Below are positions 42,505-61,000 of a stretch of DNA of 64,000 nt, piece by piece. The stretch's first letter is position 1. Each line of letters starts with the position of its first letter. Both the position numbers and the translations under genes were made by a program. Where the stretch lies: the NCBI GenBank assembly GCA_037447605.1, contig CM074805.1:4311361-4375360 (forward strand), in the 5' to 3' direction. The notes beneath the pieces are model-generated. The model was not told where the DNA came from. It was given only the letters and a program-made list of their open reading frames with translations, and did not search any database. Source of the stretch: Zygnema circumcarinatum SAG 698-1b. Its lineage: Eukaryota > Plantae > Zygnematophyceae.

Positions 42505-46650
<4,146 letters not shown>

Positions 46651-46892
46651 TGCTGCCACTTCCTGCCTGCAGGCTCCTCTTCCCTCCTCCCAGCACGCAC
46701 CAAGACGATGAAGGCGAGCGAGGCGCCGCCGACCAAGCCAGACAGCCTGCTCCGTGCATATGCTGCTGCCCCACTTCGAACTGTAACTGAAACTATGACA
46801 TCGCTACTTACAGTGCATATGAACAGTAGACCTGAGACGAAATGGAGCACGTACCTTTCCACGCTCCCGTTTTCTCCCCCTGCAATGCCTTC

Positions 46893-46930
46893 CATGCCAT
46901 GCCATGCCATGCCATGCCATGCCATGCCAT
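46893..46930. repeat. (CATGC)n pentamer array in the ELP3/VPS15 divergent spacer
   Basis: About 7.6 copies, followed by CATGCA at 46931 and 46951. Confidence 0.9.
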
Positions 46931-47132
46931 CATGCACGCAGGCGGCATGCCATGCAGTATAGCCGGCTAGAGGCCTCGCGCCTGAAGGCTCAAGGAGGAG
47001 GCTGGAAGGCTGGAAGCTCGGCCTGCAAGCGCTTGTTCTGCACTTTTTGAGGGCTTTCTGCTCTCCTTGAAAGAAGGGGAGGGGTGGCTCCCTCGGCAGG
47101 CTAAGGTAAGGGTGCACAGGCGGGGAGCTGCA

Positions 47133-50100
47133 ATGGGCAACCAGCTCGCCAGCACGAAGCCTGTCGCCTCGCCGTCAGACTATGCTCTTCACGAGCTGCC
47201 TAACAATGTGGTGTATAAGGACACTCTTGGAAGCGGGCGATTCCTAAAGACGTTGCAGTGCTTCCACGACGAAGGCCTGGTCGTTGTGAAGGTCTACTTC
47301 AAACGCGGAGAATTATTCAATGTGAAGGTATTTGCACGTGTCCCACGAGGGGGATTTTCTGGTTTAATTTGGGAGTGTATCTCGTCGACGAGATTAAAAT
47401 GATCTCATGACCGTCTCGGAATGATTGATGAATTCTTGCAGGAACATGAAGAACGTCTTCTTGAGATTCGCCAACAGCTGTCAGGGTTTGAGCAATCACA
47501 TGTTTGGCCATTCCAGGTTCGTTGTTGGAATCTCAAGCTTTTATTAAAATATTAATAACCTATTTATTTACGAATGAAATTTCTATTTTTTGAGAGATGT
47601 GGTGCTCTATCCCTCATCTTTGAAATGTCATTAGACGTGACTAGCATCCACTTATTCATTAAGCAGGTTACTGGTCACTACTAGTAGTCTATTTATGCTT
47701 TGATAAACCTTCATTCGAACAAATGGTGGTCTCTTCTGTGGCGCAGAGATGGCTGGAGACAGACAAAGCGGCTTACCTCTTGCGGCAGTATTTCTTCAGC
47801 AACCTTCATGACAGACTCAGTACTCGTCCCTTTTTGAGTCTCATGGAAAAGAAGTGGCTTGCGTTTCAGGTACTGTGACCTCTGCTTCTCACCTAAATAA
47901 TCATTCGGGCCTGTCTTTTCTCACTTAAGGTGCCGGAAGTCCTCCGCCTAGTCAAGCAATCTCCTTTATCTCCAAGTCTATTGGAAATACTTTTCGTCCT
48001 TCAAGCTTAGACTTCTGAAGTCGAATGAGTGAGATGTGATTCGCAAATTGTGCATCTCCTAACTTTTAATACCGCAGTCAAGTTGTGCTCTAACGGATGC
48101 AAACCTGCGAACTTTTCCAATGGGAAGCAGCCACTTTTCTAGGAGGTCTCAGTTTTACAATTAACATGAACATGGCCCGCGCGATTCTTTCCTGTCTTCT
48201 TCTGACCTCTGCTTTATAATGTCGTTTATGGAGTACTGGCATTAGTCCCTCACGGTTATCGACCAACTGAGGGCAATAATGATTGATTCCTGTGCAGCTT
48301 TTGAAGGCAGTGGAGCAAAGTCACGATAGGAACGTTTGCCACGGTACTTTGCACTTCCACCCTTGCAAGTTAAACAATGCTCTTGTGCTATACATAGTGC
48401 AGTGCACACAAACTTGGATAGCGGGAGTAATACATAGAAAGCCTTTCATATTTCCGTCGTCCTACTCCTAGTTTATTGCTCGCGTATAATATGCATGTAT
48501 TGGCATGAGAGGCGGTGGAGGGAATGTTAAGCAGCCAACCAATCCAGATAGCCTTGTCAAGAAAAGAAGGATGAAAGTAAGAAAGATGAACGATGTTCAT
48601 GCTGGGAATGTGGCACAGGCGACATCAAGTGTGAGAATGTGCTGGTGACGTCCTGGAATTGGCTGTATTTGACCGACTACGCCTCATTTAAACCGACTTA
48701 TCTGCCAGCCGACAATCCTGCCGATTTCTCGTTTTTCTTTGATACTGGAGGACGAAGGCGATGCTACCTTGCGCCTGAAGTAAGCTTCAGCATCCAGGAA
48801 GCACACTGCCTTTCAAATAGTATAGATTGATGTCGATCTTAGTACGTTATTCTGCAAGCCCACGGGAGAATGGTATGTTCGGCCAAATGAGACTGAATTA
48901 TTCCGGCGAAAATACTATTGATGACCGTACAGAGTGTCACTGCTTAACTGTATGATGTACACATAATCATTCCCATTGTTGTCCATATCTTATTCGTGCG
49001 TCCCTTCTACCTTTTTCTGGCCAGCTAAGGAATAGTTGGCATGGCGCTGCGTACGTTGCTGTCCGTCCCTTAGGATTGCAGGACTTTGTTTTCCCTAGGT
49101 GATGTATCTTTTGCACGGCCTTGTCCTTCAGAGATTTTACGATCCAGGAGATCCCAATTCAACTGCGGTCAACGCCGCGCTTTCTCCAGCCATGGATGTA
49201 TTTTCTATGGGGTAAGGCGCCTGGCTCATGATGCATGGTTATGTGGGTGACTAATGGTTTCGAGACGTCTTTTCTTTTGCGTGGTAAAATAATGAGGGAA
49301 GCTTTGCAAGTCCTGACCATGTGAGTTATCCTGTTTGAACACGCTTTTGCATTGGTGCTCCACTCGCTGATCATTTAACATCGTGCAATGGCACTTTGCT
49401 CTGTCTGATCGTCCAGCCTCCACTTCTAGTCTCCACGTGCCCTTGCTTCAGACAATGCAGGCGATTAGCCGTGATAGAATAGATAGTTCGGGAGAGAAAC
49501 TGCAGCATCATTCTTGTTGTATGGGGATCCCTTGGCTGCAGGATTTGCACATAATGCATTCACTGTCTCATTGGAAGCGTTGTAAAGTTCAACCCCAACT
49601 GTTCAGTAGCGAGAAGCTGGTCCTTCTGCAGGCCTGCCAGTTGATCATGTGTGGTTGGCCTTTGTTTAAGGTGTGTGATAGCGGAGTTGTTCCTGGAGGG
49701 ACAAGCACTATTTGACCTCTCAGCACTGCTGGCCTATCGCAATGGCAAGCACGAGCTTCAGCCCCTTCTTGCGAAGGTATGACTCCATGGCCTGTTTTCT
49801 GTATGGTGCTGGAACTAACCAATTTTACTCACTTTGGTAGTAGGCACTGTTTTCCATGTACGGCGTGACTTAGATTAAGCCTGCAGTGGGCCTGGAAGTC
49901 TTGGATTAAGAAACAACAGCAACCTTATTACTGGCATCTTGCTGATTCTTATGTGTTGCTTTCATCGGAAAGTTATGTGTTCTGTGTCTAAGGGCTTTGT
50001 GTTCGCATGTATGTAGGTGTTCATCGGACTGTTAGTGTCTGCCATTGTTTGCAGATTCCAGATGTTGGAATACGTGATATGGTTGCACACATGGTTCAGT

Positions 50101-53100
50101 TAAGCCCCGCTCTCCGCCTCAGTGCAAGAGGATATCTTCAGACATGGGCCCCACAAGTCTTCCCTTCCTACTTCTCACCATTTCTCCACGATTTCTTTTC
50201 TGGAATGACTACTATGGACGTGGATGCCAGGGTGAGTTATTGACAAAAGTGAAAGAGGAGGTTTCCCCCCAGAAATTGGGAATGGGAGTCTTAAGTTAGG
50301 AGTTCGTTCCTAGCTTTCATCTGGGCTCATATTAACTTTCTTAGGCACGGTCCATGTATCTCTCCTCTTAAAAGTGAAAGTATTTGGTTATTTATATACG
50401 ATAAGTGGGGCAATGCTATGTGCTAAGGTTTTCTTAACAGATAAAGCCCGATCGATGGCCTTCGACCTCCCAGCTTGAAACGGAGAACTTGTCAAACTGT
50501 GCATTTAAAGTATGGATGTAGGTTGCTCCTCTTAACTTTTGAGCATGTACTGATGTGCGATGTTTGGCTTACCATAGGTGGCAAGAACTCTTGAGGCCTT
50601 TGGTGAGATTCACGAACACATGTTGGCAGATGCACTTCAAGTGAACAAGTCCCATTTGCGAAATCTGGAGATGCTTCATATTCAAGATTCAGCACCAAAC
50701 TCCAGCCAGTCTGTTGAAATGGGGGCAGGCGTAGACTACATTACTGCAAGCAAAGAGAGGGCATTTGCACACAACCATGTTAAGGGGCAGATGAGGGGCT
50801 TAGAGACAGATGGACAAAACGATCTCATCACTGATCTTAAGAAACTTCTTGGAGACACAGAGCGGCTTCGAGCAGGAGCATCAATAATGGCTGGACCTTT
50901 TTCAACCGTCGATGACAGTATTGGCAGTGCAAGAAAAGGGAAAGGTCAAGACAGAGAGAGTAGCTCAAATAGTACCCGCAGTCGAAAGCAGTTGGTTAAC
51001 TCAGGTGGTTTTTTAAGCGGTCCTGCTTTAGTCGAAAGTCGAAACGAGCCTCCAAGTCATGGCTTTCAGAAGACTATTGCTCTGCAAGATGCATGGCATC
51101 CTGAACTGGGAGGTGATGGAGGAAGAGATGGAATCCTCGCCCAAGAAGATCGTCTTCGGGAGTTTTCAAAGCTTGATTTTGCAACACGTCCGAAGAATCT
51201 TGCAATAGCATTTGTTGAAGCAACGTCTGATGTTGAGGAACTTGTTATGGAGGAGGTGAGAAGTCACTCCTTATTGTCCCTGTTGTTGTAGGAAAGGCAT
51301 AGTCAAACCCCATTCAGACAGTACAGGCAAAACAAGAACATATATGGTGTGCCCCAAGTTCTTCGTTAGAAAATCTAGTGACTGAGTTGGACTTCTCGGA
51401 CTGTGTTTGAACCTACAAAACAACTTATAGCTCTCCAGCATCGTTTCTCGTTCAAAAGTTCACACTTTTCGATCTAGCAAGCCCGCTGCTACATTCAAAA
51501 TCCTAAGAAGATGTGGGTTATCTCGTTGACACGTCACCTTAAGGATGGACTGCACTGTTGATTATGACGACTGGAGTCTTTACTTCTTCCACTGTTTCAT
51601 ACAGGTTTACGAGTACGAGGTGCGAGAAATTGGAGCATCGTCCAATCCGCAGTCGCCTCATGCCAGCAATTCTGTGGGCATGTGGAATTCGTGGGGATTG
51701 AGCCGGCGGAAGGAAGACACGAGCTTGCCTTCAGAGGGAGGTTGGCGATGGGATGGCGAGTGGGAACTCGATCTCAGTGGCGGATCTGGAGGTGGGTCAA
51801 TGGTCACTAAGGAGCTGCATTTCGTATGCTAAGGTTTATTTTAAGGAGTCCAATGTCCTGAGGGCTTGCTTGACTGTGTAGATTTGTTTTCAAAACTATA
51901 ATTTTACCTTCCGCAAGGATCGTAAAGTAACCTCCAGGAACCGATTGTGTAATCAATCTTTCGCTTTTTCGAAATGAGTTGTAAGTTGTAAACATCCAGA
52001 ATATTACCATTGTGAAGGGAAGCAAGGCATCCTGTTGGGTAATCGTGAAGGTATTTTAGGCCATCGTTGGTACCTAAGGGCTGCAATGTTTCTTTCACCT
52101 TTCAACCAGGTCTTGGAGCTGATAAGGAAGGTTGGCGATATAGGACTTCATCAGCAAGAGAAGAGCCCTCTGAGAGTAGTGGGATGGAAGGAGTGAGGCC
52201 GGGAAGGACTGACGATTCAAAAAGTCGCAATGGCCCACTCCGAGACCGGCGGCTTGCAGGCCAAACCTCCGTCTCTGGATATGGATGGTCAAATGTTTGC
52301 ACTCCTACCAGCATGTGGAGGCAAAGGCGATGGATTCGCAGACGCAGAAGAAAACCACCCTCTCCCTCAATAGTTTCAGGTGCAGGTGAATCTAAGTTCC
52401 CTTCGGTAACATGGCCTCGTAGAGGTCAGCGACTTCCGACTGGTCGCACTGTTGGGAAATTGGGTGAGGAGGAACTCGGACACCAAGTGCGTTGTGAGGG
52501 AATGGTCCTTATTGCCGGCCTTCTATGCGGATGTTTGCGTAACCTAAAACTGCCCCAGTATCGACGAGCCTGCGTTGAACTCCTACGAGATGCTGCAGCC
52601 CACTGTGATGACGATACCCGGCTGCAACGGGTGGTGCCCTTTGTTGTCTCTCTGCTCTCTGACAATCGCGATGCATCGAACCTAGATAGTCCCGCGGTAG
52701 TCAAATATGCGGCATTGTATGCGCTAGCGGATGTTCTTGACATGGTGCGTTCGTTTCCAGCAACTGATGCCAAGATTTTCCCAGAGTATCTTTTTCCTTC
52801 TTTATCGTTGCTTCCTCAGCACAATGAGGAGACTGTGCGGGCAGCTTATGCAGATAACATCTCTAAGTTTGCGGAGTCTGCACATCGGTTCCTGATCTGC
52901 TCATCGCATGTTAGTGGATTTGTACATTCGGAAGAGGCGGGTAGCAAACTATTGACGGAGGCAGGACTTCTGTCTAGTCCAAAAATGACAGGGGGCAACG
53001 GAGTTGTAGGAGGGGAGGTTAGTGTTCTCCAACGCCAACAACTGCAGTCGCATTATGATGTAGAGTTGAACAACTTAAGGGACGCTGTGAAGGGGGTTGT

Positions 53101-56100
53101 TGAAGAGCTTGTAACTGGCCCAAGGAGCACGTCGGCTGTCCGAAAAGCCTTGTTATTACACATGGCAAGTCTGTGCCGCTTCTTTGGTCGAAAATACAGC
53201 AACGACTTTCTTCTGCCTTTACTTATCACTTTTTTGAACGACAGAGATGATCAGGTTCGAGCAGCGTTTTTTGAGCATGTTGCTCAAGTGTGCGTCTTTG
53301 TAGGGCGGACATCCTTGGAAGCTTTTCTCCTTCCCTGTATAGAGCAAGCACTTAACGATATGGAGGAGGCAGTTATTGTCAGTGCTCTCGGCTGTTTGAC
53401 TTCTCTGTGTGTTAAAGAGCAGCTGAGAAAGCGGGTTCTTTTGGGAGCAGCAGAAAGGACTGCTCCTCTTTTGTGTCACCCAAGTGCATGGGTGAGGCGA
53501 GCAGCGGTTGCTTTCATTGCCGCTTCCGGGGCTCAACTTGCCCCTGCAGATGCCCATGCTCTGTTAGCCCCTCTTTTAGCTCCTCTTGTGAGAAGGGAGC
53601 CCACCAGTCTTTCCTCAGAAGCTGCAATACTGACATGCCTGAAACCGCCAGTTTCTCGGAGGTTTTTCAACTTAGAGCTGAGCAATGCCCTGCAGTCGAT
53701 ATCGAGCACTGCCAATGTGGGGGGGTCTAAACCGTCAGATAAGCTGCCTAGCAACTTTCGGCAAGTGAGGCTCAATGGTTTGTCAGCTTCAGATCTTGTG
53801 GCATCTCCCTTCTCTGCAGGCCGAGATCATAATGGTGTCAGTAAACAGTCACTTTTGTCTCCCTCAAAGCGAGGCATGTTGGATGGAGGAGCAGGCCCGA
53901 CAAGTCCCTCTGGAGATTCTGGAGAAACGGAGGATGGCGAGAAAGTTCGAGCACTACAAGGCTATATTCGCAATTCTTCTAGCGTAATTCACTCGAAGAT
54001 AAAGCAATGGGAGGCAGAAGGGACTGACAAATTCAGACCGCCGGTGCCATCATTGCGTGCAACTTCTGTTGCAGGCCCTGCACAGAACCTCGGAAACTTT
54101 GATGGAGGGCAGGATTTGCCTTCTGTCGGAATCCCTGTTTACTCCCTTTTGTTACCCGAAAGAAAGCCTGAGCCTACATCTGCAGATGGCGATGCGGGTC
54201 AAGGAGCCGAACCAAGCGACTCCTTTGTCAGCTCAGAGTGGAATAGAGCCGTTGGGGTGCGGCGGGCAGCCTTAGGAATGGGAAGTGCGTTTGCAGGGGA
54301 GCCAAGGGGGCCCGTAATTAACCTCGTTGCACCACCCACAGGCCATTCCTTCTTGCCAGCCGCCTCTCAGCACATGCAGCGGTCTATAGCGCTTGCAGGC
54401 CCACCTTTAGTGCATAATTCTATAGCCACCTCTCGGTATTCCGGCGTTTGGGAAGACGTTACTAGGACCCTTGGACCAGTAGCAGCACTTTCCGGGTCGG
54501 TTACTGCAGGAGGGATTGGTGGTGCTGTGCCGGCAAGGATGAAGCCGGCTGGAAATTCACAGGTTGGAATTGGGACTTCTTCGCCGGTTGGAGAGAATGC
54601 CTCTTCTGACGGGCTCATGCGGGACCCTGTAACAAAGCTAGTAGGAATAAGCTTCACAATGGGAAGTTCAACAGACCACACGTGGCGGCCTAAGGGAGTG
54701 CTGCTAGCTCACCTTCATGAGCATCAGAAAGCTGTAAACCAGGTGGCTGTATCACCGAGCAACAGTTTCTTTGCCAGTGCTTCAGATGATGGCACAGTGC
54801 GAATCTGGGACTGCCGGCGATTGGAGAGGGATTTGTTATTCAAAAGTCGCCTTACGTATGGAGGCTTGCAAGGGAGGGCCTTGTGTGTTACCATGCTAGA
54901 TGGGAACCTTGTCGCAGCATCCTCAAGCACTGGGTCTGTTCATGTCTTCCATGTTGACTATGTTGCTCGTAGTGAGACTAGTCCTGAACGCTATACTGGC
55001 GTGTCGGATGTGCGGAAAGTAGAGGGCAACCAAGGCCCTGTTCTTTCCCTACAAAGCGTTACGGGAGACGGGCCAGTGCTAGTCCTTTACAGTTCTTTGA
55101 AAGGCGGTTTGCACCTTTGCGATACGCGTCTTCAAAAAGAGGCATGGGTCCTGAAACAGCCCTCCTCATACGGCTATATTTGCAGCTCTACCCTGCATCC
55201 CGGAGACCATTGGGTTGTGTCAGCAACCTCCCGAGGAGTGCTGACATTGTGGGATCTACGCTTTCGCCTTCCAGTGAATATCTGGCAGCATCCCTCGGGC
55301 GGCAAAATTGATGCTTTGGCTGCTCTCCTCCCAGGAGTCGGAGCTCTTTCAGGACCAGCTTCTTTTCCTCCTCCACATGCTCGGCCTTTGGTGTACGTCG
55401 CTGCTGGCAGAGAAGAGGTCGGACTTTGGAATGCTGAAAATGGTACATGCCATCAGGTGAGACAGCATGCCGTCAGCTCCTTTACGTCAACTTTCTGTAT
55501 TGTCGCTCCACGTGGGACGAGAAAGAAAATTAGAGGAGTGGTTGCTGTTTCATAGACGTTTGGAGAGGAGGCTGTGATGATAAGATGTGCTTTACACGCG
55601 GCATATAAACTCTGTGACATGCATGAGAGTGTCAGTGTGGAGATGTATGCTTATGCATTACAGCAACTCGAGTAAATGTCCTGTTACAGTTGGTTGGTCA
55701 AAATCGTAAACAGAAAGGTAATATTGATCGATGAATCAACCTGATTTTTATTGAGGCTTCAGGCATGGAGATTGTTAGTTGGCTTAATTTTCCCTTCATG
55801 GTCAGCATAAGTTCATGGGTTCTTGCAGAAAGCGACATCGCGCGTACACGTAGACTACGCTGCAATGTGTGCCCCAATATGGCTCGTCGTTTGTGTATTT
55901 AAGGTGTTTTGAGTGCAACTTTTTCTTACAGAGTCTACCACAAACCTTCCTTTTCTTGTAGGTTTTGCGAGTTGCTTCACCATCAGCTGTCAATGAACGA
56001 GCAGCCCTTTCCGAAACACCTGCAGCACTTCTGCCTGTACGGTCCAGCATAGTGCTCCCTACGAATGCGAAGACGCAAGGGGGAGGAAAAGCCTCTCCGG

Positions 56101-56967
56101 CAGGAGACGTCCTTGGAATGGAAGAGCTGAACTCCCCTGCTCCTCCTCTTCCTGGGTTTCGAGCTCTCCTACCTGTTGTAGGAGGGGCCACACTGATAAC
56201 AGCAGGAACAGACTGTCGGATTCGGCAATGGGATCGTCTGAGGTGGGCTCAACCATACCTCTTGCAACTATCACTTGGACTATGTTTCAGACTGCAGTTT
56301 GGGTTTTGGGTCCGATTTGCTTCATTTGAATCTTCCTTTGTGATGCCCCCCCCCCCCCTCCCCCCAATTCGCTGAGGAAGCAAAGGGTATCGTTTGACTG
56401 TGACGATTAAGATCGAACCGGACCGCTTCTATGTACCTCTTAACCATGTTGGTGTGTGTTTTGTACCGGCCGGCGGCTGCAGGCCCGATAAGAGCCACTG
56501 GATATGTGGACCCCCTGTGCCTGGGGAGGTCCCCAAACTGCAGTACGATTCACGTACTCACAGTGGCGTGCGCGTTTTGCAGGTCAGGGGCTGCCACATA
56601 GCTCCGTCTCATTCTTGGCTGAATTCCTTTTGCATCCTTTCCATCCGATCATGTTTGTTGCTCATGCTCCGGACACAAGTATGAACAAATAACGGGACTT
56701 CTGGCCTTGCTCTGCTGTCATAGAAACATGCGAAGCTCGTAATTTGACTGTTGTGTTAAAAAAAACGTTTTGCAGGAGCTGGTCGGCCCTTCGAACAGCA
56801 CTTCTGTAGAGGGAGGGGCGCGATTGCAGCAGAATTTCCTCTCGGCAGCAGCCAATGATGGCGCAGGATGCCACCGAGATACTATTTTGTCCTTATCTTC
56901 GGTGCAAGTCAGCCAGAGACTGCTCATCTCAAGCAGCAGAGACGGCGCCGTCAAGGTGTGGAAATAG
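47133..56967 (+). CDS. VPS15: VPS15 / PI3K regulatory subunit 4 (pseudokinase, HEAT, WD40) with an inserted DysF-like segment; 14 exons, about 1915 aa
   Basis: join(47133..47327,47442..47516,47747..47869,48298..48343,48619..48779,49132..49211,49671..49776,50055..50231,50578..51255,51605..51791,52110..55456,55962..56242,56483..56582,56776..56967) = 5748 nt. Motifs: MGNQ myristoylation-type start, [41 protein letters not shown]40 [19 protein letters not shown], terminal [11 protein letters not shown]. Confidence 0.93.
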
Positions 56968-58092: not shown

Positions 58093-61000
58093 CTATTGCT
58101 TCGATTTCTTTGATGGTGGAGGCCCCATTGTACTGCTGATATCTGGTTTCCGTTTAATCCCCAAGAAGTGCTCCACCTGCATGCCTCATCCCCCCCCCGT
58201 AAGATGGTAAATTCAAATCAGTCGATTTGGAAATATCATCGTTTGAGCAGCCTTTACCTCCACAGATCACACGCGCCTCAGAAAATGTCCTCTAAAGCAC
58301 GTACATGTTCAAATAAAACCCCCTCGAATGACCCATAGATAATTCCAGTGATATCGTCGTCCCCTCTATATAAGCGGGTACAACAGAGAACCTCCACTTC
58401 TTGGACCACCTAATCGTCAACCCATCCTTCGGTCTTTAGGGTTCCAAAAGTGGAAATCACAATCACAATTGTTCAAATCGGCTAACAAGCCTTTTGCGAC
58501 GTTCACACAGCTTGCTGCCAATTTTCCCTCCCAGTCTCTCACCTTGCTGTCGCCAAGCATAGGCGTAAGGCTGCCTGGAATCTTCTTGTCTCCCAACATA
58601 GGGGTCAGGCTCCCAATGTGCTCCTTCTCCACTCCAAAAGTATTACGAGGATCACTTGTCTGCCTGCCACTCTCCCGCCATCTCACCGGCTCGGTCAGAT
58701 CCTCTCACACATGATAAAATGAAAACAAATACGCCATAACAAAAGCCAATAAAAGGGAGGAAGGTACAAAGCTTCAAAACTCACCCTGGTTTAATCTGCC
58801 CACTGATCACAATGTAGGGCGCATTCATCTGCGCCTGCACCTCACGCATCCTCTCCATGGACATGAGAGGGGTGTCTCCTGCAGTCATCTTCTTCCGTTT
58901 GAGCTCCTCATTGTACTGTTTGATCCTCTTCTCCTGCTTCAGCTTTCCAGGGCCCTTTCCATGGAACTTGTGTGAAAGAACCCGGAATGCCTCCTTCGGA
59001 GTCATCTGTATACAGCCCTCCACAAGACACGAAGGTGTCACACATGAATTCTCTGCCTCTCTCATCCTTGTTCTAACCTCCTCATTCACGATCACACACC
59101 CTCATGTGTTCTACTGCTGTCAAGCAAAACAACACATGCAAATCAGAGACAGTTTCGCCTACCATCCAATCTTCCGCGGTAGAAAAGCAAGCACCATGCA
59201 ACCAAGAACTTCACTCTCATATCAATCTCTCCATTCTCAAATAGTGCAATTACCATAAATGTGCATTTTTTCTACCCACAGTTTCATCCACTATCGTAGA
59301 GGTAAGGAGGACATCTCTCTAAGACCTCACCTCTCGTCCGAACTCATCCCGCCGATCAATGCGAATTTCCTTCTGTCCCGATGGTGCTACAGAATCCAAA
59401 ATGCCCACAAGCTTGCTCTTCTTTTTGTCCATATTCCGACCGCCCCATTCAGGGTCTTTCTGCAGAGCCCCTCTATCCTTAAGGAGATGCAATATCCCAG
59501 CAAGTCCCTTGCCTACAGGGGCCTCTGCAATTGTATCGTCATCTTCATCCTCTCCCTCCTCTTCCTCCTCCTCCTCCTCTCCCTCTCCATCCTTTCTCCC
59601 ACTACCCTCCTGTTCCCCTTTCACTTCCCTCCACCCCCCCCCTCCCTGTTCTTCAGCAATAGGCTCTGCAGCTGCTTCCTCCTCCATAACAACTTTTGCC
59701 TCTTCCTCCTCCTCTGCAAACACGTCTTTCTCTGCAATTCGCCTCGTGATAGCTGCACAGATAACACAAAGATAAAGAGAACCACAAGCACCTTGTCATC
59801 CTTAGCGTTTGATTACTCTATCATGCCATCGTTTCAGTTTCCGCAGTCAAGAACTGAACCGCTTTCCCGCTTCTCTATGTTTCACACATCCCAACTCCCA
59901 CAATATACCTTGCTTACAAAAACCAGAAATCATTAAGGCTGCCCCATAAGCTGAGAGGGAAGGCTGTCCCAATACATACCATCATCCAACTGCAAGCTTC
60001 GGCAAAACTCCCCTGTATCTGTGAATATTAGCCCTCCTCCGAACCCCGCTTCACCTCCTCCCTCCCTTGGCTCCTTCTTCACCTCCTTCAGCTCTGCCAA
60101 CCTCTCTACCAGCGTCTGACGACCAGCCATGGCTGCCGTCTCTGCTCTCTTCCTCAAAGCAGCTTGTCTCGCCATTTCCAACGACCTCTCTAACTCTGCA
60201 TCCTCCTCTGCACCAATCATCATATCCTCCTCCTCTTCCTCCTTCACCTCTTCCTTCACCTCTTCCTTCACCTCTTCTTTCACTTTTCCAGCACCATCCA
60301 CATCTTCAACAACAACAGCTATCTGCCCGCTGTTCCCTCCATCAACATCCATGTCTACCGTCTCCCTAAGAACTTTCGAATTTTCTACAGCTTTGTTGTA
60401 GGCTTTCTCATATGCAACACGCTTTTCTTCTGCCACTCTCTCTCTCTCCGCTACCTCCTTAGCAGCTCTGCGACTCCCCCGGTCTCCAATGGTTTCAGCT
60501 CCTCCAAGGCCCATTGCCTTCGCCTCTGCTTCAAGAGCATCATAGTCGAGAACCTCCTTTCTGCTTCGCACTTTTTTCTTTTTCTTAGGCTTTCTCATCT
60601 GTGACATTTCTTCATTTGTTAAGTAGTCACTCGACTTGACCAATATTGGACCCCCAAGGCTCTCCTTCTGTCCAGTCAAACCCTGCAACTTTCGTCTCAC
60701 CTGACCCACCCCGAAGCAAAACACATCCCTCCTTTCAGGTTAGGAAAGCTCCCTCGGACTTCCTCGGAAACCTAAAGCGAAAATAAGAAAATATTGTTGT
60801 TCCACATTCGAAAAGTTCAAATGCCAAATGCATTAATTTTGGTGACATTCGCGGAGTAAGGATTGAAATCAGCATCAACTGCATGCAAGACACAAATGCA
60901 TAAAACAAATGCATTGCTTTGGTAATGTCAATGTAAATGTTAACGAAGGTATGCTTCCTTACCTCTTCCAGCCGTTTGCGATTCTCCTCATCGATTCCTC

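Follow-up and report, generated by a model that had tools for sequence, protein, structure and literature searches.

A DysF-type module in the kinase–HEAT linker of a Zygnema VPS15, shared with green algae, mosses and a lycophyte

The VPS15 gene found in a 64,000-nucleotide stretch of Zygnema circumcarinatum SAG 698-1b DNA (the window) appears to carry a complete DysF domain in the linker between its pseudokinase and HEAT repeats. On balance, we favor the reading that this module is ancestral, that it was lost repeatedly and that it most likely serves as a second membrane-contact or lipid-recognition element. VPS15 is the scaffold of the enzyme complex which starts autophagy and vacuole traffic, and is generally regarded as an unvarying assembly of three parts, kinase, HEAT and WD40. 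In the literature searched, no paper describing a DysF domain in VPS15 was found. The features discussed below were the following:

47133 to 56967, plus strand: VPS15 (PIK3R4) gene, ~12 exons, boundaries outside the DysF module approximate
50578 to 51255, plus strand: VPS15 linker exon, 678 nt (226 aa), open frame, AG at 50576-7 and GT at 51256-7
51229 to 51255, plus strand: DVEELVMEE, last 27 bases of the linker exon, first half of strand 1 as assigned by alignment
51605 to 51791, plus strand: exon A, 187 nt, ending in phase 1, N-terminal half of DysF
51792 to 52109, plus strand: intron, 318 nt, phase 1, splitting a glycine codon inside the DysF module
52110 to 52354, plus strand: start of exon B (first 245 bases), C-terminal half of DysF
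52355 to 55459, plus strand: rest of exon B, with a short linker, the HEAT/helical solenoid from near 52490, followed by a long linker and then the initial WD40 blades

By sequence, the window gene is a VPS15 orthologue. Its best hits were the VPS15 of Physcomitrium, Sphagnum, Marchantia and Diphasiastrum, with E values reaching 6.7e-257 and identities of 42–46%, and tblastn with VPS15 of Physcomitrium, Sphagnum, Diphasiastrum, Marchantia, Chlorokybus and Spirogloea gave collinear HSPs between 47133 and 56964, so that best hits and collinearity agreed with named VPS15 proteins along the whole length. The gene begins with the start codon of MGNQLAS and stops after DGAVKVWK. The domain order was that of VPS15: N-myristoylation motif, pseudokinase, helical/HEAT region and WD40 propeller. 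Exon B matched PF22956 (VPS15 helical domain, E 2.4e-20), as well as HEAT and WD40 families in Pfam, and WD40 exons were recognized by tblastn also at the C-terminus. The 3' end of exon B is uncertain, with candidates at 55456 and 55471 in a splice-site scan, and the protein length of roughly 1,900 aa depends on exon boundaries that are partly approximate.

The 226-aa stretch ahead of the module, regarded in the first-pass annotation as a further insertion, is a real exon, whose start and end align to VPS15 orthologues. It encodes the end of the kinase-associated region and then the long polar kinase–HEAT linker, with a length variable between species, and no Pfam family matched it. Its last residues are homologous to K(A)AA.AM...EEVV.EE, which precedes the module in other species. 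The linker sequence around the module is polar and poorly conserved.

In frame, the module follows the pseudokinase and precedes the HEAT solenoid; it is spread over three exons (51229..51255, 51605..51791 and 52110..52354). DVEELVMEE aligns to S/ALEEVVTEEV.E.Q.R of the orthologues, and residues 3-16 of the homologue model described below form a strand. Exon A contains the rest of strand 1 (VYEYEVRE), a long loop with GMWNSWGL...RRK and the stack tryptophans W-x-W-x3-W; counterparts were found by tblastn in moss, lycophyte and Chlorokybus. The start of exon B, which aligns to all orthologous modules, contains GADKEGWRY, then a polar loop, GYGW and the final strand, which bears the stack arginines. 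The peptides quoted in the first-pass annotation for these two exons translate as given there, and its motifs LP..GW.W...W.(I/L)D, EGW.Y and RRRW.R were read correctly. Strand 1 of the window lacks the canonical glutamine of E.Q.R (YEYEVRE), and the window loops are longer than those of other species.

The splice sites around the module are canonical: exon A lies between AG at 51603-4 and GT at 51792-3, and a pyrimidine tract precedes the AG at 52108-9. The intron 51792..52109 has the donor GTGGGT and the acceptor ...TTTCAACCAG. Skipping of exon A would shift the frame and lead to a stop at 52196 (ORF 52035..52196), and exon A is therefore needed for the HEAT and WD40 parts. No transcript or cDNA of the window species was found, and the use of the exon rests on frame, splice sites and orthologues. 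An artefact of the gene model, with exon A unused or belonging to another transcript and the mature VPS15 lacking the module, would fit with the missing cDNA and with the in-frame alternative donor at 51776 and acceptor at 52119, use of which would make a loop 5 or 3 residues shorter, respectively. We consider it very improbable, because the skipping of 187 nt breaks the frame, the same junction is present in deposited proteins of six genera (Physcomitrium, Sphagnum, Diphasiastrum, Chlorokybus, Tetraselmis and Spirogloea), and the intron is conserved in both phase and position.

A module HMM built only from VPS15 of other species recognized exon A with 46.2 bits (HMM positions 10-66) and the start of exon B with 49.5 bits (positions 72-144), adjacent to each other. 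The next best of the 1394 six-frame pieces of the window reached 8.0 bits, and at the sequence level the match to the VPS15 module is far beyond chance. In the alignments, a conserved block V.E.Q.R...LP.EGGW.W.G.WEVD...G.D.EGW.Y...GW...RQRRWIRKRRR was present in 10 to 17 rows (A2, A5); between chlorophytes and a lycophyte its W, R, LP and GG positions did not vary. Full-length guide rows were needed for a correct alignment of the module; MAFFT alignments of the exon halves alone (A1, A3) placed EGWRY under GGWRW and were discarded.

At the same site of VPS15, the module was found in Tetraselmis (chlorophyte), Chlorokybus, Spirogloea (zygnematophyte), Physcomitrium, Sphagnum and Diphasiastrum (lycophyte). 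Both paralogues carried it in Physcomitrium, one had it and one lacked it in Sphagnum, and Marchantia had none. The phase-1 intron was located at the identical codon position in four loci, that is the window, Sphagnum and two further genomic loci, which had the same exon pair ahead of the VPS15 HEAT repeats. Likewise, the split codon of L002, L003 and L004 precedes the A/G-D of G.D.EGW.Y by four residues, and the deposited protein P0008 bears out the Sphagnum junction.

The range of the module was surveyed with an HMM made from seven DysF-bearing VPS15 of Physcomitrium, Sphagnum, Diphasiastrum, Chlorokybus, Tetraselmis and the metagenomic homologue P0069. It recovered the building lineages, as expected, and also Spirogloea, which was absent from the build (E 5e-11), and gave nothing at E<=10 in the remaining sampled VPS15. 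The module was thus not detected in the sampled liverwort, Selaginella, fern, gymnosperm, angiosperm and Chlorella-type (trebouxiophyte) VPS15, with Selaginella, fern and Ginkgo represented by a single gene model each. A word search with the Physcomitrium module (P0002 residues 425-575) returned only the two Physcomitrium paralogues and Diphasiastrum, being too insensitive for assessing the range, and a metagenome scan with the L001 module gave no relative. A profile of the N-terminal halves (A4) gave eight hits in the whole library, which holds one representative per 50% cluster, so that clusters with a DysF-less representative hide the domain. Three of these hits were real (P0069 and two exon-sized ORFs), and the other five were spurious repeat proteins matching loop columns.

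From the presence of the module in chlorophyte to lycophyte VPS15 and its absence in other sampled groups, we conclude that DysF in VPS15 is probably ancestral to green plants and was lost several times. The first-pass annotation had proposed a lineage-specific graft of a lipid sensor, which would make it a recent addition to VPS15, and the Arabidopsis-type and all sampled seed-plant VPS15 do lack the module. This origin is wrong, given the same-site module in VPS15 from the chlorophyte, Chlorokybus, the zygnematophyte, the mosses and the lycophyte, and an intron position and phase common to four loci. The same annotation had considered that the architecture might already be standard in non-seed-plant annotations; the architecture is indeed common there, but in the precomputed Pfam lists consulted it was flagged on one Physcomitrium isoform only.

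The assignment to DysF was approached by profile, fold and structure searches, all with single window exons or with homologues. In Pfam, the C-terminal part of Pex24p (PF06398, curated gathering cut-off 26.8 bits) corresponds to DysF. Pex24p was the only Pfam family found for the module stretch in four independent VPS15 genes, with collinear hits at profile positions ~231-358. The best match was Physcomitrium P0001 (26.6 bits, E 3.8e-6), followed by the L001 module (18.4 bits, E 0.0012), a Sphagnum exon (15.4 bits, E 0.0096) and the single window exon A (12.3 bits, E 0.085, profile positions 292-316), all of them below the cut-off. The C-terminal half encoded by window exon B gave no Pfam match when scanned alone. 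The profile check suggested earlier thus singled out the expected family, collinearly, but no hit on any VPS15 module reached the curated cut-off. Protein-language-model neighbors were the Pex24p and Peroxin/Ferlin clusters. Sequence searches of the PDB (phmmer with the L001 module and window exon A, and a profile of the N-halves, A4) gave no DysF chain, only weak matches of designed ankyrin repeats to a loop.

The DysF fold consists of two long antiparallel strands that form a finger and are held together by Trp/Arg stacks. The stack residues of the module are W47, W49 and W53 in exon A, and EGW(R)Y, R70, R72, W74, R76, R78 and R80 in exon B, giving the series W-x-W-x3-W ... GW.Y ... R-x-R-x-W-x-R-x-R, mapped by spacing and not by residue-level structural alignment. 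They are kept in all orthologous modules. The spacing equals that of TECPR1 (W116/118/122; R159/161/165/167) and dysferlin (R1038/1040, W1042, R1044/1046/1048) (PMC10476172, PMC3898210).

The fold was predicted on the natural intron-free homologue P0069 (L001:1264-1683, from a metagenome), to which the window exons were aligned, and so refers to this homologue and not to the window's own spliced domain. Two AlphaFold models had strands at 3-16, 66-81 and 125-138, the first model with a pLDDT of 60 overall and 73-82 in the strands. They displayed the two long antiparallel strands and the long wrapping loop of DysF. With model 1, the top 10 Foldseek matches were all DysF and the next match had E>3, and among the 48,161 chains searched exhaustively with VIA only 4cah, 8p5p and 9h6x reached Z>=5 (24-30% identity). 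Model 2 gave the same outcome, the top 9-10 Foldseek matches over both models being all DysF. The top hits of the two independent fold searches were only dysferlin, myoferlin and TECPR1 DysF, with 21-30% identity over 83-91 aligned residues. Low-confidence loop makes up about one third of the model, which kept the scores modest (Foldseek E about 2e-3, Z 4.1-5.7). By structure prediction, the homologous module of the intron-free relative was shown to fold like dysferlin, myoferlin and TECPR1 DysF, and for this homologue the structure check proposed in the first-pass annotation came out in favor of DysF.

The signature could also have arisen by chance in a Trp/Arg-rich, low-complexity piece of disordered linker. 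The polar and poorly conserved surroundings, the Pfam hits staying under the gathering score and the missing PDB DysF chains in sequence searches would suit such mimicry. It is nevertheless highly unlikely, as the block is conserved from chlorophytes to the lycophyte with its invariant residues, four independent genes hit the same single family collinearly, and only DysF stood on top in two fold searches. An in-frame DysF-type domain between pseudokinase and HEAT, as originally claimed, is thus in agreement with Pex24p as sole family, with the homologue fold and with the stack spacing.

In yeast and human complexes, the VPS15 domain before the module lies at the membrane-touching tip beside VPS34. 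Adjoining this domain, the DysF would be an extra membrane-contact or lipid-recognition element, and may help to set which membranes, or which lipid state, receive PI3P from the class III PI3K complex. We infer this role because the module follows the membrane-tip domain and because the distal tip binds membrane lipids in the two DysF domains whose ligands are known: the Pex30 DysF binds phosphatidic acid (PMC12101078, PMC12101077) and the TECPR1 N'DysF binds sphingomyelin (PMC10476172). Lipid sensing by the VPS15 DysF would be by analogy only, and is a guess, since most DysF domains have no known ligand and sphingomyelin binding is limited to one of the human ones (PMC10476172). By the same analogy, an anionic lipid such as phosphatidic acid appears more plausible as a putative ligand than sphingomyelin, which is unlikely; the tip loops are not conserved among VPS15 modules. 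To our knowledge, green plants make no sphingomyelin.

A real, folded DysF could alternatively act by protein contacts or intramolecular regulation, for example by docking a partner, or by keeping the pseudokinase and the N-myristate inactive. [quoted passage not shown] We regard this as possible but rather unlikely, considering that lipids are bound by both DysF for which a biochemical activity is defined (PMC12101078, PMC10476172), that the insert adjoins the membrane-proximal end of VPS15, and that no partner is known.

With the membrane-contact or lipid-recognition reading preferred, a further, speculative step is that the green-plant ancestor and many extant algae, mosses and clubmosses had a class III PI3K complex with its own DysF lipid sensor. 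A stress lipid (e.g., phosphatidic acid) on the target membrane would then directly trigger PI3P synthesis, and the sensor would later have been lost or outsourced in liverworts, ferns and seed plants. We hold this scenario to be doubtful. If true, it would connect a stress lipid to PI3P and to autophagy or membrane repair, as a built-in counterpart of the role of TECPR1 in animals.

DysF in VPS15 looks old, and not like a local novelty. From chlorophytes to a lycophyte, VPS15 would gain a further folded domain, one of a class that binds lipids, at its membrane-facing end, and VPS15 would become the third protein context for DysF, after Pex30-type and TECPR1/ferlin proteins. Its absence from the searched literature would be explained by loss in the most-studied plants. 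The module may offer a means of studying how PI3P synthesis is directed to particular membranes, with the differences between Physcomitrium, Sphagnum and Marchantia as natural and engineerable contrasts.

Like canonical VPS15/PIK3R4 (yeast Vps15, human PIK3R4, Arabidopsis VPS15), the window gene has the MG myristoylation motif, the pseudokinase, the PF22956 solenoid and the WD40 propeller. In described VPS15 the kinase–HEAT linker is short, whereas in the window, several algae, mosses and the lycophyte it contains a DysF of ~150 aa; besides DysF, the window protein has some 200 aa of extra polar linker. The Pex30/Pex24p DysF resembles the VPS15 module in its ENQR-like, LP..GW.W..W.vD, dGW.Y and RRRRW.R motifs, but Pex30 proteins reside in the ER membrane and have a reticulon-homology domain, which the window VPS15 lacks, and compared with the Pex24p family the VPS15 module has much longer loops and scores just below the cut-off. 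The N-terminal DysF of TECPR1 (8P5P) resembles the homologue model (Z 5.5, 83 aligned residues, 24% identity), with the same W/R stack spacing, and both proteins belong to autophagy-related machinery, TECPR1 as an ATG5-binding E3 subunit and VPS15 as the PI3K scaffold. The TECPR1 tip residues W77, K152, K153 and W154, which recognize sphingomyelin, are not conserved in other DysF (PMC10476172). The best structural matches were dysferlin's and myoferlin's inner DysF domains (4CAH, 2K2O, 9H6X; Foldseek E 1.5e-3 to 2.3e-3, Z 5.7 and 5.5, 27-30% identity), with Arg/Trp stack residues common to both sides. We know of no ligand established for the ferlin DysF domains. These occur as nested pairs in multi-C2 proteins, whereas the VPS15 module is single.

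VPS15 is encoded in the window by a single multi-exon gene on the plus strand, which opens with MGNQLAS at 47133 and closes with a stop codon at 56965-56967. It aligned collinearly, exon by exon, with full-length VPS15 of Physcomitrium, Sphagnum, Diphasiastrum, Marchantia, Chlorokybus and Spirogloea. A large exon (exon B) carried the PF22956 VPS15 helical domain (E 2.4e-20), plus HEAT and WD40 repeats. Its word search matched VPS15 orthologues only, the best (bryophytes, lycophyte) at 42-46% identity. These matches point to a green-lineage source that lacks close relatives among the database entries. Three exons contribute to the DysF-type insert, hereafter the module:

50578..51255, plus strand: exon of 226 aa preceding exon A, real by alignment to orthologues
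51605..51791, plus strand: exon A, 187 nt, phase 1 end, with AG at 51603-51604 and a GTGGGT donor at 51792
52110 onward, plus strand: start of exon B, preceded by a pyrimidine tract and then AG

On re-reading of the window, the coordinates and peptides of the first-pass annotation were correct, and the ~226-aa stretch it had reported at 50578..51255 is a genuine exon, both ends of which align to VPS15 orthologues. Its first residues align where the kinase-associated region ends, the middle is a polar, non-conserved linker, and the last residues align with K(A)AA.AM...EEVV.EE of the orthologues, which places the first DysF strand from ~51229. This strand departs from the consensus, with YEYEVRE in the window versus (F/Y/W)E.Q.R in most orthologues.

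The end of exon A splits a glycine codon (G|GT). Without exon A the reading frame would change and meet a stop at 52196 (ORF 52035..52196), so a functional VPS15 needs this exon. A scan for frame-compatible GT/AG pairs detected an alternative donor at 51776 and acceptor at 52119, which would leave the WELD-GADKEGW loop five and three residues shorter, respectively. The 51791/52110 pair had a better consensus and gave the loop length of the moss orthologue. The intron, in phase 1 and in the codon four residues before the A/G-D of G.D.EGW.Y, was identical in position and phase in the window, in Sphagnum (contig L002) and in two further genomic loci (L003 and L004); the Sphagnum junction gave back the deposited protein. 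No cDNA of the window species was found.

A module HMM was built on the module columns of seven aligned natural VPS15 proteins from other species, with the window left out. Exon A scored 46.2 bits (HMM positions 10-66) and the start of exon B 49.5 bits (positions 72-144). Among the other 1394 six-frame pieces, taken from the whole window, the highest score was 8.0 bits. Judged by these sequence scores, the match exceeds chance.

The only Pfam family matching the module stretch was Pex24p (PF06398), a family with DysF as its C-terminal third. Four separate genes matched it at collinear profile positions, all below the curated cut-off of 26.8 bits: window exon A (E 0.085, positions 292-316), the Sphagnum exon (E 0.0096, 293-316), the module of P0069, an intron-free metagenomic VPS15 homologue (E 0.0012, 250-358), and Physcomitrium VPS15, P0001 (E 3.8e-6, 26.6 bits, 231-335). 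The window C-half scanned alone had no Pfam match, and PDB sequence-only searches with the module, exon A and an N-half profile gave no DysF chain. Language-model neighbours of the Physcomitrium module were Pex24p and "Peroxin/Ferlin domain" clusters (scores 0.83-0.84), leads only.

For structure prediction we used the P0069 module (L001:1264-1683), uninterrupted in the DNA; its alignment consisted of orthologues at full length together with the two exons from the window. Model 1 had a mean pLDDT of 60 (strands 73-82) and long strands at 3-16, 66-81 and 125-138. Its best ten Foldseek matches in the PDB were all DysF, including myoferlin 9qle (E 1.5e-3), dysferlin 4cah, myoferlin 2k2o and TECPR1 8p5p; the next one had E>3. 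VIA-align, independent of Foldseek, gave model 1 a Z>=5 with only three of 48,161 representative chains: 4cah_B (Z 5.7, 88 aligned, 30% identity), 8p5p_A (Z 5.5, 83 aligned, 24%) and 9h6x_D (Z 5.5, 84 aligned, 27%). Model 2, from a 17-row alignment, had a pLDDT of 64 and only DysF among its top nine Foldseek matches; a second look with VIA gave Z 4.1-4.9 over 85-91 residues. Loop makes up a third of the model, which keeps the absolute scores modest. The matches were specific to DysF and covered nearly the whole 107-123-residue targets. The structure check proposed in the first-pass annotation put DysF structures on top for the predicted fold of this homologue. Three independent kinds of evidence agree on a DysF identity.

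The streptophyte modules in the 17-row alignment had in common a C-x-P-x-C pair (…STCTPDCVWRQRRW…), placed immediately ahead of the last DysF strand. The window has C-T-P-T-S in its place (52298-52321), and chlorophytes differ. No counterpart elsewhere among DysF domains is known to us.

The module was present in both Physcomitrium paralogues, one Sphagnum locus (S. fallax, S. troendelagicum), Diphasiastrum, Chlorokybus, three Spirogloea models with shortened loops (E 5e-11), the chlorophyte Tetraselmis and P0069. A whole-library profile search added two exon-sized ORFs on genomic contigs, P0216 (L004) and P0217 (L003), where an N-half exon and an intron are followed by the C-half and VPS15 HEAT repeats. 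At E<=10, an HMM built from module-bearing VPS15 proteins found none in VPS15 of Marchantia, Riccia, Calypogeia, Selaginella, Adiantum, Ginkgo, Cryptomeria, Taxus, Chlorella and Parachlorella, in ~150 angiosperm sequences, or in sampled fungal and other eukaryotic VPS15-like proteins, several of these absences coming from single gene models only. It was not detected in the second Sphagnum paralogue (S. jensenii, S. compactum, S. troendelagicum). The Sphagnum types with (P0003-P0008, P0017) and without the module (P0009, P0012-P0014) offer a natural within-genome contrast. Marchantia keeps the KAAAIAM flank and the HEAT start CEGMVLIA around a short unrelated linker, which looks like a deletion.

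The first-pass annotation had read the module as a lineage-specific graft. This reading did not hold, as a homologous module occupies the same site in chlorophyte, Chlorokybus, Spirogloea, moss and lycophyte VPS15, and four loci share the intron. From the common insertion site, sequence homology and shared intron we argue for one origin, predating the chlorophyte-streptophyte split. Placed on the accepted phylogeny of plants, a single origin of this age requires no fewer than five losses (trebouxiophytes, liverworts, Selaginella, euphyllophytes and one Sphagnum paralogue).

Full-text searches for VPS15 with a DysF or dysferlin domain returned co-mentions in unrelated contexts only, and we found no description of the architecture in the literature searched. 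Among precomputed Pfam lists of ~200 VPS15 proteins, PF06398 occurred once, on a Physcomitrium isoform; module sequences are therefore public, one of them machine-flagged.

Spirogloea muscicola P0132, P0153 and P0214 (2110-2153 aa) carried an N-terminal amino-acid transporter family (PF01490), and are probably two adjacent genes fused by annotation. For the eukaryotic VPS15-like P0071 (ENA, 1910 aa), the precomputed Pfam list included a DEP domain (PF00610), and no DysF module was present. VPS15 may have acquired different accessory domains in other lineages.

Upstream, a minus-strand ORF (46144-46659) that resembles the N-terminal part of the Elongator subunit ELP3 is in head-to-head orientation with VPS15, ~470 bp (46660-47132) before the VPS15 start codon; given this layout, the two may have a common bidirectional promoter. 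Within the intergenic region, a CATGCCATGG-like unit is repeated in a short tandem array (~46880-46950), translated in ORFs as MAWHGMAWHGMAWH and MPCHAMPCHAMPCH. Downstream, minus-strand ORFs 58781-59095 and 59933-60724, with acidic and lysine-rich stretches, resemble a gene for the tri-snRNP protein SART1/Snu66, in tail-to-tail orientation with VPS15.

Established structural work on the complexes of yeast and human places the myristoylated VPS15 pseudokinase next to the kinase domain of VPS34, at a tip that touches the membrane. A DysF finger tethered directly after the pseudokinase would be well placed to contact the same membrane. Phosphatidic acid binding by the Pex30 DysF was reported both in vitro and in simulations, with a general DysF role in PA homeostasis suggested by the authors (PMC12101078, PMC12101077). 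The N-terminal DysF of TECPR1 binds sphingomyelin via exposed tip residues, as no other human DysF does (PMC10476172). Given the pseudokinase-adjacent position and the lipid binding of Pex30 and TECPR1, our preferred reading is that the module serves as a second membrane or lipid-recognition element, which would bias the site of PI3P synthesis. In a green alga, sphingomyelin would be an unlikely ligand. An aromatic-basic patch in the window's first loop could be the lipid-contact tip; in the 17-row alignment it was not conserved in other species. Action through protein contact or autoregulation is a serious rival to the lipid-recognition reading.

The published DysF stack residues were all present in the window with the same spacing (W47, W49, W53, the EGW Trp, R70, R72, W74, R76, R78 and R80). 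By spacing only, W47, W49, W53 and the EGW Trp correspond to W116, W118, W122 and W138 of TECPR1, and R70, R72, R76 and R78 to its R159, R161, R165 and R167 (PMC10476172). Likewise by spacing only, R70, R72, W74, R76, R78 and R80 match R1038, R1040, W1042, R1044, R1046 and R1048 of dysferlin (PMC3898210).
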